DNA of 64,000 bases from sequence record PV340851.1; one strand, given 5' to 3'. How positions within the stretch are numbered: position 1 is the first letter of the stretch; every line of letters starts with the position of its first letter. The translations under genes and the position numbers were made by a program. Below the pieces are notes generated by a model, which saw nothing but the letters and a program-made list of their open reading frames with translations, was not told where the DNA came from and did not search any database. This document shows, one piece after another, positions 21,196-61,200 of this stretch.

Positions 21196-21575
21196 AACCA
21201 GAACTAAAAGATTACCTATACAGCATCAATCAATCTAAGCAATCAGTCATCGTAGATGCTGAGGCAGAGAAAGCATACCCACCTTTCATTGTCAATAAGT
21301 GCTTGTCTTCTTTCGTGGATAGCATCTTGTATGCTAATGAAATGAACAAGTGTACTCACTTAGATAAGAAGTTACAATATGACTTCTATATAAATAGTTT
21401 GAAGCCGAGGAAGAGATTCAGTCCTTGGTTGCGTAAAGATACAGTTGAGAATATTGATTTGGTGAAACGTTATTATGGATACAACCATAGTAAAGCAGTC
21501 GCCGCTCTTAGAATTCTTACTACGGCTGATCTTGAGCAGATCAAACGAATATTAGATAAAGGCGGTACACGATGA
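21192..21575 (+). CDS. gp62: Clamp loader small subunit
   Basis: Motifs YPPFIVNKCLS and QYDFYINSL..RKRFSPW. Confidence 0.93.
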   Translation: MKPELKDYLYSINQSKQSVIVDAEAEKAYPPFIVNKCLSSFVDSILYANEMNKCTHLDKKLQYDFYINSLKPRKRFSPWLRKDTVENIDLVKRYYGYNHSKAVAALRILTTADLEQIKRILDKGGTR

Positions 21576-21994
21576 CAACTGAAATTGTAATTGATTGGAA
21601 ACCATCTGACATGGTGGAAGTAGTTCTAAATGAACCAGATGATTTTCTAAAAGTGAGGGAGACGCTAACAAGAATTGGTGTAGCATCTCGTAAGGACCGT
21701 AAGTTGTATCAGTCCTGTCACATCTTGCATAAGCAAGGGAAGTATTATATTGTCCACTTCAAGGAACTGTTTGCCTTGGACGGTAAGAATACTAATCTCT
21801 CTGCTAATGATGTACAAAGACGTAATCGTATTGCACAACTTCTATCGGACTGGGGTCTGATTAGTGTATGTGATAAGTCATACATTCAAGATGTTGCTCC
21901 TTTGAATCAGATCAAAGTGCTATCGTACAAGGATAAGGGTGAGTGGATCCTAGAGTCGAAATATAACATTGGCAGAAAGAAACCTGAGGCATAA
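21572..21994 (+). CDS. regA: Translational repressor RegA
   Basis: Motifs DDFLKVRETLTRIG and LYQSCHILHKQGKYYIVHFKE. Confidence 0.97.
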   Translation: MTTEIVIDWKPSDMVEVVLNEPDDFLKVRETLTRIGVASRKDRKLYQSCHILHKQGKYYIVHFKELFALDGKNTNLSANDVQRRNRIAQLLSDWGLISVCDKSYIQDVAPLNQIKVLSYKDKGEWILESKYNIGRKKPEA

Positions 21995-21999
21995 ATAAC

Positions 22000-22078
22000 A
22001 GTGAGTCTTTCGTGCAGACTCTACGAATGTCGGAACACCCTACAAAGTGATGCGGTTTATACCACATCACTTTTTTTG
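22000..22078 (+). ncRNA. Putative small RNA with an H-type pseudoknot and terminator
   Basis: Late promoter at 21991; stem GAGTCT/AGACTC; loop TTCGT pairs with ACGAA at 22023-22027; terminator AAAGTGATG/CATCACTTT plus T tract. Confidence 0.55.
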
Positions 22079-22098
22079 TGTCTTGATTAAATAATAAT

Positions 22099-22157
22099 GG
22101 ATGCCTTCGGGGTCCATACAACCAATGTCTCGCTTAAATAAAGGAGCTATTCAAATG
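22099..22157 (+). promoter_or_regulatory. ROSE-like hsp20 leader (putative RNA thermometer)
   Basis: cUUCGg hairpin, then CTCGCTT-AAATA-AAGGAG pairing over the SD with a bulged G in UCGCU. Confidence 0.55.
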
Positions 22158-22562
22158 ACAAATACTTGGGATATCTATCTCCCCCACGCTGTAGGTCTGA
22201 GTGATATGTTTCACAGACTGGATTCGATGACCAGTCACAACACGAACTATCCTCCGTATAACCTAATCAAACATGACTCCAGTAATTACGAAATTCAAGT
22301 CGCTCTCGCAGGATTTAAAAGAGAGGAGATTGAAGTATCTACTGAATCAAACATTCTCAAAGTTGCCACGAAGACTGCAGGAACGGATCCTAAAGTTGAG
22401 TATCTGCACAAGGGAGTGTCGAAAAGATCATTTGCATTTACTAAGCAACTCAGTGACGATGTTAGAGTTGTGGACGTAGCATTTGAAGATGGTCTGTTGA
22501 TTATTAGTTTAGAAAAAATTATTCCAGACCACATGAAACGAACCACATACGAAGTCAAATAA
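22155..22562 (+). CDS. hsp20: Small heat shock protein (Hsp20)
   Basis: Motifs NYPPYNLI, YLHKGVSKRSF and FEDGLLII; AAGGAG SD supports the start at 22155. Confidence 0.95.
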   Translation: MTNTWDIYLPHAVGLSDMFHRLDSMTSHNTNYPPYNLIKHDSSNYEIQVALAGFKREEIEVSTESNILKVATKTAGTDPKVEYLHKGVSKRSFAFTKQLSDDVRVVDVAFEDGLLIISLEKIIPDHMKRTTYEVK

Positions 22563-22573
22563 ATATCTGGCAT

Positions 22574-22610
22574 AGGGGGCATTGCCCCCTTTCTCATTTT
22601 GTGTTATACT
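22574..22610 (+). terminator. Terminator hairpin overlapping a sigma70-like promoter
   Basis: AGGGGGC-ATT-GCCCCCT plus T-rich tail; TTGCCC(22582)-N17-TATACT(22605). Confidence 0.6.
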
Positions 22611-22630: not shown

Positions 22631-23107
22631 ATGTCCGAACAGATTATTGTGTTTAAGAATGGCGAGCGCGTCATCACTGAACTGAAGGAAGTGTTTGAAG
22701 GTGAGGGTGATGATCGTAAAGGCGTGTGCCTTATGATGAATCATCCTTACATTCTTGAACTGATTGAAGTTAATGATGGTGGTGCCCGTGACCTTCAAGT
22801 TAAGTTCAGCAAGTGGTGCCCATATTCCGTTGACTACCAGTTCCGTGTCCCCTATGACACCGTACTGGCACTAGGCGAACCCGACCAGGGACTCGCTGCA
22901 GCATACCGCCAGAAGGTAGAGGCAATGGAAGCAACAGCAACTGGTGACGTTCCTGAAGCGCCCCCAGCACCCACTGAGGTAGAAGACCTGGGGTGGACTG
23001 AGGGTGAGACCAACCCCAATATGGAGCAGCAGAAGGCAGACATTGATGCTGCTGTAAATGGTTTCTCTGGTAATGGAGCACCTGCTGACGCTAGTGTTGG
23101 AGCATGA
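22631..23107 (+). CDS. Hypothetical protein, possibly Sm-like fold with an acidic tail
   Basis: SD AGGAG; IIVFKNGERVITEL...HPYIL. Confidence 0.75.
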   Translation: MSEQIIVFKNGERVITELKEVFEGEGDDRKGVCLMMNHPYILELIEVNDGGARDLQVKFSKWCPYSVDYQFRVPYDTVLALGEPDQGLAAAYRQKVEAMEATATGDVPEAPPAPTEVEDLGWTEGETNPNMEQQKADIDAAVNGFSGNGAPADASVGA

Positions 23108-23358
23108 TTAAACTTTTGAAATTCGACGGGCATTGGCTCGTCGCTGAAGTTGAAGAAATTGAAGGTGCTGAGTTGGGTGACCCTGATTGTGTGCTAAAAT
23201 ATGCCTGCGAGGTGAACGAGGATGGGGCAGTGCCCTTTCCTCCCTACAGCGAAGACACCGAGTTGGTAGTGCGTTCAGAAAACATCATGATCATTTCTGA
23301 ACCATCTGCAATGTACTCGGCACTATACTATGACTTGAAAGACAAACGAGGCGAATGA
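23104..23358 (+). CDS. Hypothetical protein
   Basis: ATGA-coupled to g43. Confidence 0.75.
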   Translation: MIKLLKFDGHWLVAEVEEIEGAELGDPDCVLKYACEVNEDGAVPFPPYSEDTELVVRSENIMIISEPSAMYSALYYDLKDKRGE

Positions 23359-51378: not shown

Positions 51379-51653
51379 ACGATCTAGACCCCAAGTCTGT
51401 TGCATCAACAAAGACTACTGTAATCCACGAACGATATCCATATCGTTATGTACAAAAGGGTTACATCAAACTCAATGGTAAACCTGACCTGCGTCTCCAG
51501 AAAGCAGATGAGTATACTAAAAAGTATACTGACATCTATCTCTTTGACAACGCTGATCAATGCTTCCTTGCCATTGAAGACTTCGAGTATGCCAAGTGGT
51601 TAGACCCCGAAGGTGTTCCTTGCTATATTAAAGATACTGTTTCCAACAACTGA
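51375..51653 (+). CDS. Hypothetical protein
   Basis: ERYPYRYVQKG...EDFEYAKWLDP. Confidence 0.75.
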   Translation: MNDLDPKSVASTKTTVIHERYPYRYVQKGYIKLNGKPDLRLQKADEYTKKYTDIYLFDNADQCFLAIEDFEYAKWLDPEGVPCYIKDTVSNN

Positions 51654-58279: not shown

Positions 58280-61200
58280 TCAGACACCGTACTTGCCACG
58301 GGTAGCATTGAAGTTCTGGGATACTTCTGCTGCTGTTAGAACTTTACTATACATTTGAACTTCACCACACTCCATAGGTTTGTATTGTGCTAAAGCACTA
58401 TCAAGTCTACCACCAATTACCATGGGGTATCTTGTATTGCCATCCAAAGATCCAACTGTTCCAGTGTTAGTTGCTGTTCCAGCATTAGCACCATTTCTGT
58501 ATGGTGTTAGAGTTTGTGTTGAAACATCCCAAGTGAAAGCATCACAAGTCCACTCATCAACTGTTGGGAAAGTGTATTGGAAAGCAACATTATTATTGCT
58601 GGAATCTCTAACAGCAGCAGACCAATTGTTAGTTCCTCCTTGACCTAATACCCATCCACTGAAAGGAGAAGAAGCTGCTCTCTCAAACAAACCACCTCTA
58701 CCACCAGTGCCAGTAATCTTATACCAAAAGACAACACTAAAGTCTGCTGATCCAGGTGCCATTACACTACTTGATTGGATGTAATCATTTGTTCCATCAA
58801 ACTCAAAATACCCAGCAGGATTGAATGTAGCTCCGTTGATTGTGCCAGGGAAAGAATTACTTGAGAGGTTCTTTACTGTGGTTGGTGCTCCAACTGAGGT
58901 AGCATATGTTGGAACATAATTTCCAGCAGTAGATGCTTTTTCAATTTGTGGTCCCCAAATATAGAGTGCCTTATCTAATTCTCTAACAATAACTGGATAA
59001 GCATTAGCTTGATTTTGAGGTGTGAAAGTCCAAGTAAATCTTTGCCACTTATCAGTAGCAGTAAAATCAGATGGGTTTTGTGTTGGAGAAAATAAATTCA
59101 TAGCGAAAGTAGTTGTCTCTCCATCTGCTGCTCTAACCCACACAGACATAGTATGAGTTTCTGTTCCCATGGCACCAATACCATCATAGATGTATTGTGT
59201 TAATGTAGTAGTTGGTTGCCATTTAGTAGCAGTATAATCTCCAACTGGCGAAAGAACATCAGTTGTATTAGTCGTTACACCATTCGGACCCTGTAAATTC
59301 CAATTGGAACTACCATAATTTGTGCTGTTATCATATAAGTTATGTGCTCGATTATAAGTCGCTCTGTTTCCAAAGTCATAGTTCAGAAGCAAGTTGCTAT
59401 CAGTTACAATACCAGGACCAATCCTAGGTGCTGTGTCAGGTGCTTCGTTGATATACTTAGACTTGGTGGCGTTGTAGTTTTGGAATACTTGTTCTGCTCT
59501 TAGAGCTTTTGGATAGATACGAACTTCACCAACTTGACCATCAAAATATCTACTAGCTAGAACGAACCCTCTGCCAAGTATAAGGTTTCTGATTTCTCCA
59601 TACCAAGTATTACCAGCGGTTCCATTTTGACCACCTGTTCCTACAAATTCTCCGTTGATATAAGCAGATCCATCTGATCCCAAAGGACCAGCGATAGAAA
59701 GAACAGCGTGATTCCATACGCCTGTGGTGATTTCCGCACCTGGCGATGGAAAGTTTCTATTGTTATCATCTAATGGAGCACCCCAATACCACGAGCAATT
59801 ACCACTAGCATTAATTTCAAGTCGTGGTCCTATGTTTCCTGATTGTGTGGTGCCAGTAGCATTATTTACATGGTAGTTACAGTCAATAGGATTCTGCCAG
59901 TTGCTGAGAGTATCTGATTTAAACCAGATCTCTACAGTCATTTCACTAAAGTCTCCTGGAATCTCACCGATCTGTAAGATTTCTGATTGATCAAAGTTAT
60001 AAGCACCACTAACTATGTCAGGAGCATGTTCAGTTCCAGCAGCATTTTCTGGAGTGTTGTTTGCGTTGTTAGTATAGTATCGTAATGGATTAGGACCATC
60101 TACAAGTTGAGCTCCCCAGAGATACCATAGGTCTCCTGTCTCATTATTCTCGTTGTATCCACCGATAGCACCACTTCCTGTATTGTTAGCAGTGAACGTC
60201 CACACTACTCTATGCCATTCAGTATCTGTTGGTTTGTAAACAGTGCTGGAAGAAACATTTTCTAAAATATTTCCATCACGATCAGCAAAACTAATAGTGC
60301 TATTGCTAGCTCCAGCATATAATACTTGGAAATTCCACTGAGCGTTTGTAGTAATTGCTTTCATCCACCAAGAGTAGGTGTATGTTTGTCCTGCTACAAA
60401 AACTCCAGCTGGAACACCATACTCAAGTCTTCTGCCACTAGTAGCACTGATATTATATTTCTCTGCTCGGACGCCGACACCAAGAGGATTGGCAATATCA
60501 TTAGCAGTAATATTTACATTAGTAGATTGTCTAGTCCATGTATTATTTGGTGTTGGTGAAGTATTAGTTGAGGCAGGTGACAGCGATTCCGAAAGACCGA
60601 TATAGTTTTTCTGTGGTGGAACTCCATACTCATCAGTAGTATATTCTCTAGTTTCAAAATCAGCAGGTCTAATAGCAGGACTGCCACTGTATTGAATGAC
60701 ACCAGCGTCTTTGATATTAACTTTCTTCTTAGTTACTTGTGTAGCATAGTCATCAAAGATAATATGATTAGCAGAGAAGGGAGTCTTTCTTAGATCACTG
60801 CTATCAAATCGTACAGAACCATCATCTAGTCTGCCGATTTTGTCTGTGATATTTAAGATTTCATATCCCTGATTGATGCCAGTGCCATCAGGATATTGGA
60901 ATGCACCTAGACCATTACCAGATGTACTTACTTTACCAAAGACATATCCTTCGGGTGTGTTAGTGATAGAGATTCTATCTTCATCAACAAATGCTAGGTA
61001 GTAGAATGATGAATCAGCATCTAGTACAGGATTATCAACGAAAGAAGATGAGTCACTGATCAATGATCTTCTCCATAGCAAGGTTCCATTCTTGGAATAC
61101 TTACTTAGAGCTGCACCATCCTCAGTTGTGTTGGACCAGTAACCTAGGACAATGACTTGCTCTGTTTGATTGTCTGCAAAGACACGACGATGACTCATGT

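Follow-up and report, generated by a model that had tools for sequence, protein, structure and literature searches.

The hsp20 gene of a T4-like cyanomyovirus is preceded by a leader in which a ROSE-type hairpin masks the Shine-Dalgarno (SD) sequence, and temperature gating is the most likely function of this leader. We favour, as the probable reading, a short thermometer of the ROSE type that was inherited with an ibpA-like gene, now stands behind a phage promoter, and lets heat raise the translation of Hsp20. The leader belongs to the known ROSE class, of which it is a new, viral and very widespread member present in hundreds of related marine phages. ROSE-like thermometers are defined by an imperfect pairing between U(U/C)GCU and the SD, with a bulged G (PMC11342760). 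The first-pass annotation, made from the sequence of this stretch of DNA, had placed the leader in that class, and in silico we find the U(U/C)GCU-SD pairing, the bulged G, a stable 5' hairpin and an IbpA-family small heat-shock protein (sHSP) gene. Leaders of this class contain two to four hairpins, of which the 3'-proximal one bears the SD, and here the SD lies in the second of two.

Genomic context and transcription signals

The window, a stretch of 64,000 nucleotides from record PV340851.1, comes from a T4-like cyanomyovirus and is 100% identical to the Synechococcus phages Sf-CH3 and Sf-FP1 (isolated on WH8102). Around the leader, the gene order is regA, an intrinsic terminator, the leader, hsp20, two DUF6561 genes and the DNA polymerase gene. 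The regA gene (21572-21994; Pfam Translat_reg, 4.4e-45) is followed on the plus strand by the terminator at 22044-22077, with a stem of 9+3 bp and then a run of U (-15.1 kcal/mol, z -4.70, none of 200 shuffles as good). T-runs are kept at this position 3' of regA in relatives. This terminator shields hsp20 from transcription coming from upstream. A smaller hairpin, near 22003-22021, precedes it in the region downstream of regA (21991-22080).

From the terminator to hsp20, the leader region is composed of TTAAATA, a first hairpin (hairpin I), an A/C-rich spacer and a second hairpin (hairpin II), with 56 nt counted from 22099. The TTAAATA reported at 22087 by the first-pass annotation is indeed present (22087-22093, plus strand), and is a promoter-like variant of NTAAATA, the late-type motif of cyanophages (PMC2984593). 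Its spacing to hairpin I is fixed in relatives, at 5 nt and rarely 4-6, and the hexamer TAAATA is there preceded by T, A, C or G. In some lineages it is replaced by TATAAATA and in others by TATAAT, at 7 nt. Late promoters of T4 start transcription around 6 nt after the last A of TATAAATA. Since the motif ends at 22093, the start predicted from this spacing is G22099 (plus strand), which is the first base of hairpin I. For the TATAAT variants, +1 falls within 1 nt of the base equivalent to G22099.

In terms of distance, the hsp20 motif lies 61 nt from the ATG, approximately twice the value for other genes in the window, where NTAAATA is found 22-39 nt 5' of many ORFs. In phage P-HM2, hsp20 is a middle-class gene and the adjoining upstream regA is late (PMC5082946 supplement), which fits a separate promoter for hsp20. 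RNA-library contigs of relatives span the gene and several begin at 22086-22098, contig ends not being transcription starts.

As for the remainder of the window, intergenic NTAAATA motifs 22-39 nt 5' of ORF starts are located at 587, 3162, 4394, 6780, 29449, 32683, 33854 and 40926 on the plus strand, and at 58280 and 46156 on the minus strand. These positions are a map of likely late promoters for the Sf-CH3/Sf-FP1 phage. On the 3' side of hsp20, an ATAAATA overlaps the stop codon (region 22559-22610), a G+C-rich terminator hairpin is found at 22574-22590 (z -2.56), and a sigma-70-like promoter match at 22582-22610 stands ahead of the next gene at 22631. Between hsp20 and the DNA polymerase gene stand the two adjoining DUF6561 paralogues (22631-23358), of 158 and 84 aa, the first of which carries an Sm-like annotation.

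The hsp20 gene and its start codon

The gene itself (22155-22562, plus strand) encodes a 135-aa IbpA-family (class A) sHSP, with a Pfam HSP20 match at 1.5e-12. The top NCBIfam matches of the protein are IbpA (3.8e-24) and IbpB (2.6e-22), both under the equivalog cut-offs, and its identity to E. coli IbpA is 34% (E 7e-27). Among T4-like cyanophages, hsp20 is a core gene (PMC3037559). In a search of 185,579 species genomes, the closest cellular homologues of the phage protein are proteobacterial IbpAs, with cyanobacteria absent among the best 80 cellular matches. Alphaproteobacterial homologues that carry ROSE are among these closest relatives, at 44-46% identity. Cyanophage sHSPs have been described as proteobacterial in type, not of the host type (PMC3827213).

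The GenBank start of Hsp20 in Sf-CH3 is at 22125, within the leader, which adds 10 codons. The in-frame ATGs at 22101 and 22125 were considered as possible coding starts and rejected, as neither is conserved in relatives. By contrast, relatives retain the ATG at 22155, together with an AAGGAG eight bases 5' of it and the N-terminal residues MTNTW. We therefore take 22155 as the true start and 22099-22154 as a non-coding leader. In P-HM2 (locus L167, 269-340), the annotated start of hsp20 also falls before the expected ATG: the leader model and the SD both point to one that lies 72 nt further downstream.

Folding of the leader

Hairpin I (22099-22115, plus strand) is a 5' stem-loop with a bulged G, GGAU-G-CC / UUCG / GG-GUCC, that folds at -6.4 kcal/mol; it is the cUUCGg hairpin already recognised in the first-pass annotation. 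We also considered it as a terminator and rejected this, there being no U tract after it. The spacer (22116-22128, plus strand) is single-stranded, A/C-rich and ACAAAC-like, and it is conserved in relatives and in one bacterial ibpA-like leader (L086).

Hairpin II (22129-22146, plus strand), CUC-G-CUU / AAAUA / AAG-GAG, is the candidate thermosensor. It consists of CUCGCUU (22129-22135), with the anti-SD UCGCU at 22130-22134, a loop (22136-22140), and the SD AAGGAG (22141-22146). UCGCU pairs with the AGGA (22142-22145) of the SD, leaving G22132 unpaired in the minimum free energy (MFE) structure. The first-pass annotation had drawn this hairpin with its bulged G, and the unconstrained fold of 22122-22154 returns it, with an outer extension of four pairs and a total of -3.7 kcal/mol. 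The extension (plus strand), in which AAUG at 22124-22127 pairs with UAUU at 22148-22151 across a U/C mismatch, is not conserved in relatives.

As first drawn, hairpin II has a free energy of -4.45 kcal/mol at 15 C, -3.25 at 25 C and -1.8 at 37 C. Deletion of the bulged G22132 in silico brings it to -5.6 kcal/mol at 37 C, the stem being 3.8 kcal/mol more stable. Isolated hairpin II ranges from -2.4 to -5.8 kcal/mol at 37 C across phages, with -3.3 to -3.7 in the window, and this range brackets the validated E. coli hairpins of ibpA (-4.6) and ibpB (-5.1 kcal/mol).

The fold of the single sequence is not above shuffles, with z -0.74 for the whole leader, -0.69 for hairpin II and -1.58 for hairpin I, so that one sequence could not decide the structure and comparison does. 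When 21 coding bases are added, a competing register (GCUU with GAGC) wins in the window sequence. In a ranking of SD occlusion among window genes, hsp20 is third of 14 usable starts, a position too weak to count. Nearest-neighbour modelling, which took in the joint probability of an unpaired SD and in-silico mutants, gives a near-flat SD accessibility between 15 and 45 C and, for isolated hairpins, a T50 of approximately 60-80 C, far above physiology; it is equally flat and over-stable for the validated E. coli thermometers, and so we regard it as uninformative and did not use it as evidence.

Conservation and covariation in phages

The comparison used 80 Hsp20-encoding loci from IMG/VR (52-96% identity), of which we inspected the 90 bases 5' of the start codon. 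All 80 leaders follow one plan, with a promoter-like hexamer, hairpin I, an A/C-rich spacer and an SD-bearing hairpin II. Conservation upstream of cyanophage hsp20 genes had been named in the first-pass annotation as a check on the proposal, and the plan is found in 137 distinct leaders. The anti-SD is U(C/U)GCU in 130 of these (UCGCU in 122, UUGCU in 8) and ACGCU in 5. The unconstrained MFE of the last 40 nt is ((((.(((....))))))) in nearly all of about 50 distinct relatives, with the SD paired and the bulge on the G of CGC.

A covariance model built from 15 phage leaders, named R1, has one match in the window (22099-22157, E 5.6e-11), and this is the sole match in the 200-kb genome (GenBank record). 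A weak R1 score at 51572-51618 on the minus strand (13.6 bits, E 0.27) is probably due to chance. With the same model, the element was found in phages Syn9, P-SSM4, P-HM2 and S-PM2. Pelagiphage HTVC008M has no significant R1 match (6.9 bits, E 0.74); by eye, its leader follows the same plan, in which TATAAATA is separated by 5 nt from a hairpin whose core is AUGCC..GGGU, and CUUUGCUUU..AAAAGGAGG comes after it.

Exact copies of hairpin I have at least 120 matches in IMG/VR. Among the matches listed, 106 contigs could be evaluated, and an Hsp20 ORF follows under a strict pattern in 94 of them, the other 12 being variants of the same leader. Hairpin I is identical at 17/17 positions and the anti-SD at 6-7/7, where four-fold synonymous sites are 33-57% identical.

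As for covariation, MAFFT misaligned the SD arm and pair counts were taken from a model-fitted alignment of 56 leaders, which leans towards structure; in it, 97.3% of cells pair against 92.4% after shuffling, and none of 500 shuffles reaches the observed values. This bias is offset by the unconstrained folds, which are independent and give the same hairpin. Controls in which the partners were slid fall to 37-69% pairing. Both stems covary, with 8 pairs showing changes on both sides. In hairpin II, the outer stem switches from UCUC/GAGA to ACUC/GAGU and to AGAC/GUCU, and the loop-adjacent U-A becomes A-U. In hairpin I, A-U changes to U-A, U-G to C-G or U-A, G-C to A-U (Syn9) and C-G to U-A (S-PM2), and the loop swaps UUCG for GAAA in some relatives.

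Some variations of the plan were observed. Two IMG/VR contigs (L222 686-760; L279) have an insertion of approximately 30 nt between hairpins I and II, possibly a third hairpin. One lineage (L206, L226, L232, L260, L270, L292) has GUCGCUU..AAGGAC with the AUG directly 3' of the stem, which leaves an unusually short distance from SD to start and brings the start codon up against the hairpin.

Relationship to bacterial ibpA and ibpB leaders

The leaders of the closest cellular homologues match Rfam ROSE (alphaproteobacteria, 62-72 bits) or ROSE_2 (Enterobacterales), above or near threshold. When Rfam was run on the phage leader alone, ROSE_3 (RF02523) was the best of 4227 families, over its full length and with E 0.047, at a score of 17.9 bits that is under the gathering score of 43. 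A scan of 2.5 kb around the leader gave no ROSE match. When ROSE_3 was run over the complete genomes of Syn9 and P-SSM4, its best match in each was the hsp20 leader. The conserved hairpin I core of ROSE_3, GGAUGCC..GGGUCC, is identical to the phage core; the family was presumably built from Pseudomonas-type leaders. For E. coli ibpA, the leader scores 100 bits with ROSE_2 and 20.8 bits with ROSE_3, and the genuine ibpA leaders of Yersinia, Serratia and Pectobacterium reach 26.9-30.5 bits against a ROSE_2 threshold of 65. With genuine leaders also falling below threshold, the gathering score is to be read as an operational cut-off.

In the reverse direction, R1 matches the E. coli ibpA thermometer hairpin (E 6e-4) and aligns over its full length with the E. 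coli ibpB leader. Over 80 bacterial loci there are 56 R1 matches at E <= 1, all but three on the sense strand. They are mostly located just 5' of ibpA or ibpB, many cover the full model, and many come from Enterobacterales and marine gammaproteobacteria. The matched bacterial leaders adopt this two-hairpin fold as well, and their hairpin I also has the bulged G, for example in Buttiauxella (GCUU-G-CC..GG-GAGC) and in an Alteromonadaceae MAG (GGAC-G-CUC..GAG-GUCC). In a low-GC Pseudomonadota MAG, a sigma-32-like promoter is followed by a small hairpin, the spacer CACAAACA and then UCUUGCUU..AAGGAGA. Judged from these sequences, the phage leader shares its lineage with the ROSE-like thermometers on the ibpA and ibpB genes of proteobacteria.

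Comparison with known systems

The nearest characterised counterparts are the ibpA leaders of Pseudomonas, where two-hairpin ROSE thermometers of 61-62 nt suffice (Krajewski et al. 2013, PMC3669281). In these, heat melts hairpin II but leaves hairpin I closed, the latter having a presumed role in folding or mRNA stability, and deletion of the bulged G abolishes induction (PMC3669281). The phage leader resembles them in having two hairpins in approximately 56-62 nt, with a stable and G+C-rich hairpin I, a free AUG, a hairpin II in which U(U/C)GCU and the SD pair around a bulged G, and an IbpA-family sHSP gene downstream. It differs in being a viral element with a phage NTAAATA (or TATAAT) promoter in place of sigma-32. 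Its hairpin II is shorter and richer in A-U, without the flanking G-C clamps of Pseudomonas, and the phage infects a marine cyanobacterium whose living range is 15-30 C.

The leaders of E. coli ibpA (ROSE_2, RF01832) and ibpB are thermometers according to the passages of PMC8155344 that cite Waldminghaus 2009 and Gaubig 2011. The ibpA leader ends in a hairpin, CUCGCUG-AUUU-CAGGAG (then CUAUU), that is nearly the same as hairpin II of the phage. Unlike the phage leader, on which ROSE_2 has no match, the ibpA leader has three hairpins and a different 5' part. The plan of the ibpB leader is that of the phage: the E. coli ibpA-ibpB intergenic leader (L084 6899-6952, minus strand) has a UUCG-loop hairpin and then CUCGCUU..AAGGAG. 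No Rfam family matches this intergenic leader at E <= 1.

Classical ROSE elements (RF00435), found at alphaproteobacterial sHSP genes, share the anti-SD motif and the bulged G; they have four hairpins in approximately 94-100 nt against two in 56 nt in the phage, with no Rfam match to the latter. The cyanobacterial hsp17-type thermometers (PMC4152365, PMC4477652) are comparable as translational thermosensing of an sHSP gene and belong to the host phylum, whereas both the protein and the leader of the phage are proteobacterial in kind (PMC3827213).

Proposed mechanism and alternative explanations

Under the reading we favour, a phage promoter of the NTAAATA type would start the hsp20 mRNA at or adjoining G22099 and so produce the 56-nt leader with two hairpins. 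By analogy, hairpin I, as a stable 5'-terminal stem-loop, would help folding and protect the mRNA. In hairpin II, the anti-SD UCGCU would lie on AGGA across the bulged G, forming a weak helix that may hide the ribosome binding site at low temperature. Warming would open hairpin II and allow more translation of Hsp20, with a melting range and an effect on translation that we infer. Most probably the leader came with the ibpA-like gene, the bacterial sigma-32 promoter being swapped for a phage promoter. Against this reading, marine hosts experience little variation in temperature, so that a heat switch may be of small importance, and cyanobacteria depend less on SD pairing.

Self-repression by the protein is the alternative that survives best, and we consider it unlikely as the main role of the leader. 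Here the leader would be mainly an operator on which free Hsp20 oligomers block translation, clients would titrate Hsp20 away, and temperature would act indirectly. Precedent exists in E. coli, where IbpA binds the ibpA 5' UTR and represses its translation, for which R93 and Y34 are needed (PMC10474464). R91 and Y32 of the phage Hsp20 align with these residues and recur in every phage sequence examined; IbpB, for its part, has Q there. The arginine is, against this, widespread in alpha- and gammaproteobacterial IbpAs, so that its presence in the phage protein is weak evidence. A further point in favour is that the sequence of hairpin I is conserved far beyond what pairing needs, with a core common to ROSE_3, as expected of a site bound by protein. 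The clients envisaged are aggregates or assembling capsid proteins. Self-repression is compatible with a thermometer, to which it would be a plausible added layer. We tentatively suggest a dual sensor, which is a possibility well short of the favoured reading, in which hairpin II reads temperature and the invariant hairpin I, common to Pseudomonas-type ibpA leaders, is a docking site for Hsp20 in self-repression. Such a leader would be the first viral thermometer of the ROSE class, and ocean-wide in marine T4-like phages (Synechococcus, Prochlorococcus and probably a SAR11 phage).

Rather improbable is that the structure was inherited and now acts as a constant translational damper (hairpin II) with an mRNA-stabilising 5' stem-loop (hairpin I), giving no meaningful response at 15-30 C. 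The near-flat prediction of SD accessibility would suit such a damper, except that the same modelling shows no melting for validated thermometers either. Hairpin I lies exactly at the predicted 5' end, like stabilising 5' stem-loops (PMC3669281), and hsp20 is a core, constitutively used gene of the middle class (PMC3037559; PMC5082946 supplement). What argues for the thermometer instead is that the bulged G and a weak, imperfect stem are kept across the 137 leaders, as a plain damper could use any pairing.

A late promoter within the hairpin II loop, which the first-pass annotation had itself raised as an alternative, now appears very unlikely. In T4 genes e and soc, a late promoter within an inhibitory hairpin frees the ribosome site. 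The phage leader also has a late-promoter-like heptamer within the hairpin that masks the SD, the TTAAATA at 22134-22140 (plus strand), so upstream transcripts could carry the inhibitory hairpin and the loop could start a shorter, translatable late mRNA. This heptamer is the same as the upstream promoter-like site, and NTAAATA is the late motif of the phage. It is nevertheless probably not a promoter, given that TAAATA is in the loop of just 25 of the 137 distinct leaders and that transcription beginning approximately 6 nt downstream (near 22146) would give an mRNA with a 9-nt leader and no SD, which sets it apart from genes e and soc. Furthermore, TTAAATA is not enriched in the window, with 10 found against 9.4 expected.

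Lastly, we give next to no chance to a role at the DNA level, in which the conserved sequence would be a Pho box bound by the host PhoB, as was proposed for the S-PM2d equivalent, where ATTCAAACTCGCTTAAATA upstream of hsp20 is given as a putative Pho box (PMC10976474): the S-PM2d fragment showed no PhoB binding by EMSA and the gene no low-phosphate response by RNA-seq (PMC10976474), the CTTAAATA half-site is missing from most leaders, and the covariation points to RNA pairing.

Significance

A full-text literature search found no paper linking cyanophages or hsp20 of cyanophages with an RNA thermometer or ROSE, and the leader is undiscussed in the cyanophage sHSP literature examined (including PMC3827213). 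In terms of annotation, the analysis corrects the leader-internal starts of Sf-CH3 and probably P-HM2, as well as the published "Pho box" of S-PM2d. It also reveals that the Rfam ROSE thresholds miss a large and homogeneous viral clade.

The phage seems to have taken the gene along with its RNA switch. If this is true, it would be a clean case of a gene moved with its cis-regulatory RNA while the promoter was swapped, and the range of ROSE thermometers would grow beyond alpha- and gammaproteobacteria to include viruses, as well as translation in cyanobacteria and SAR11. If gated by heat or stress, the hsp20 leader would offer a testable handle on when the phage needs its chaperone. Should the dual sensor hold, the phage would tune its supply of chaperone to both heat and the load of unfolded protein in infection. 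Finally, there is relevance to ocean warming, which could alter phage infections.
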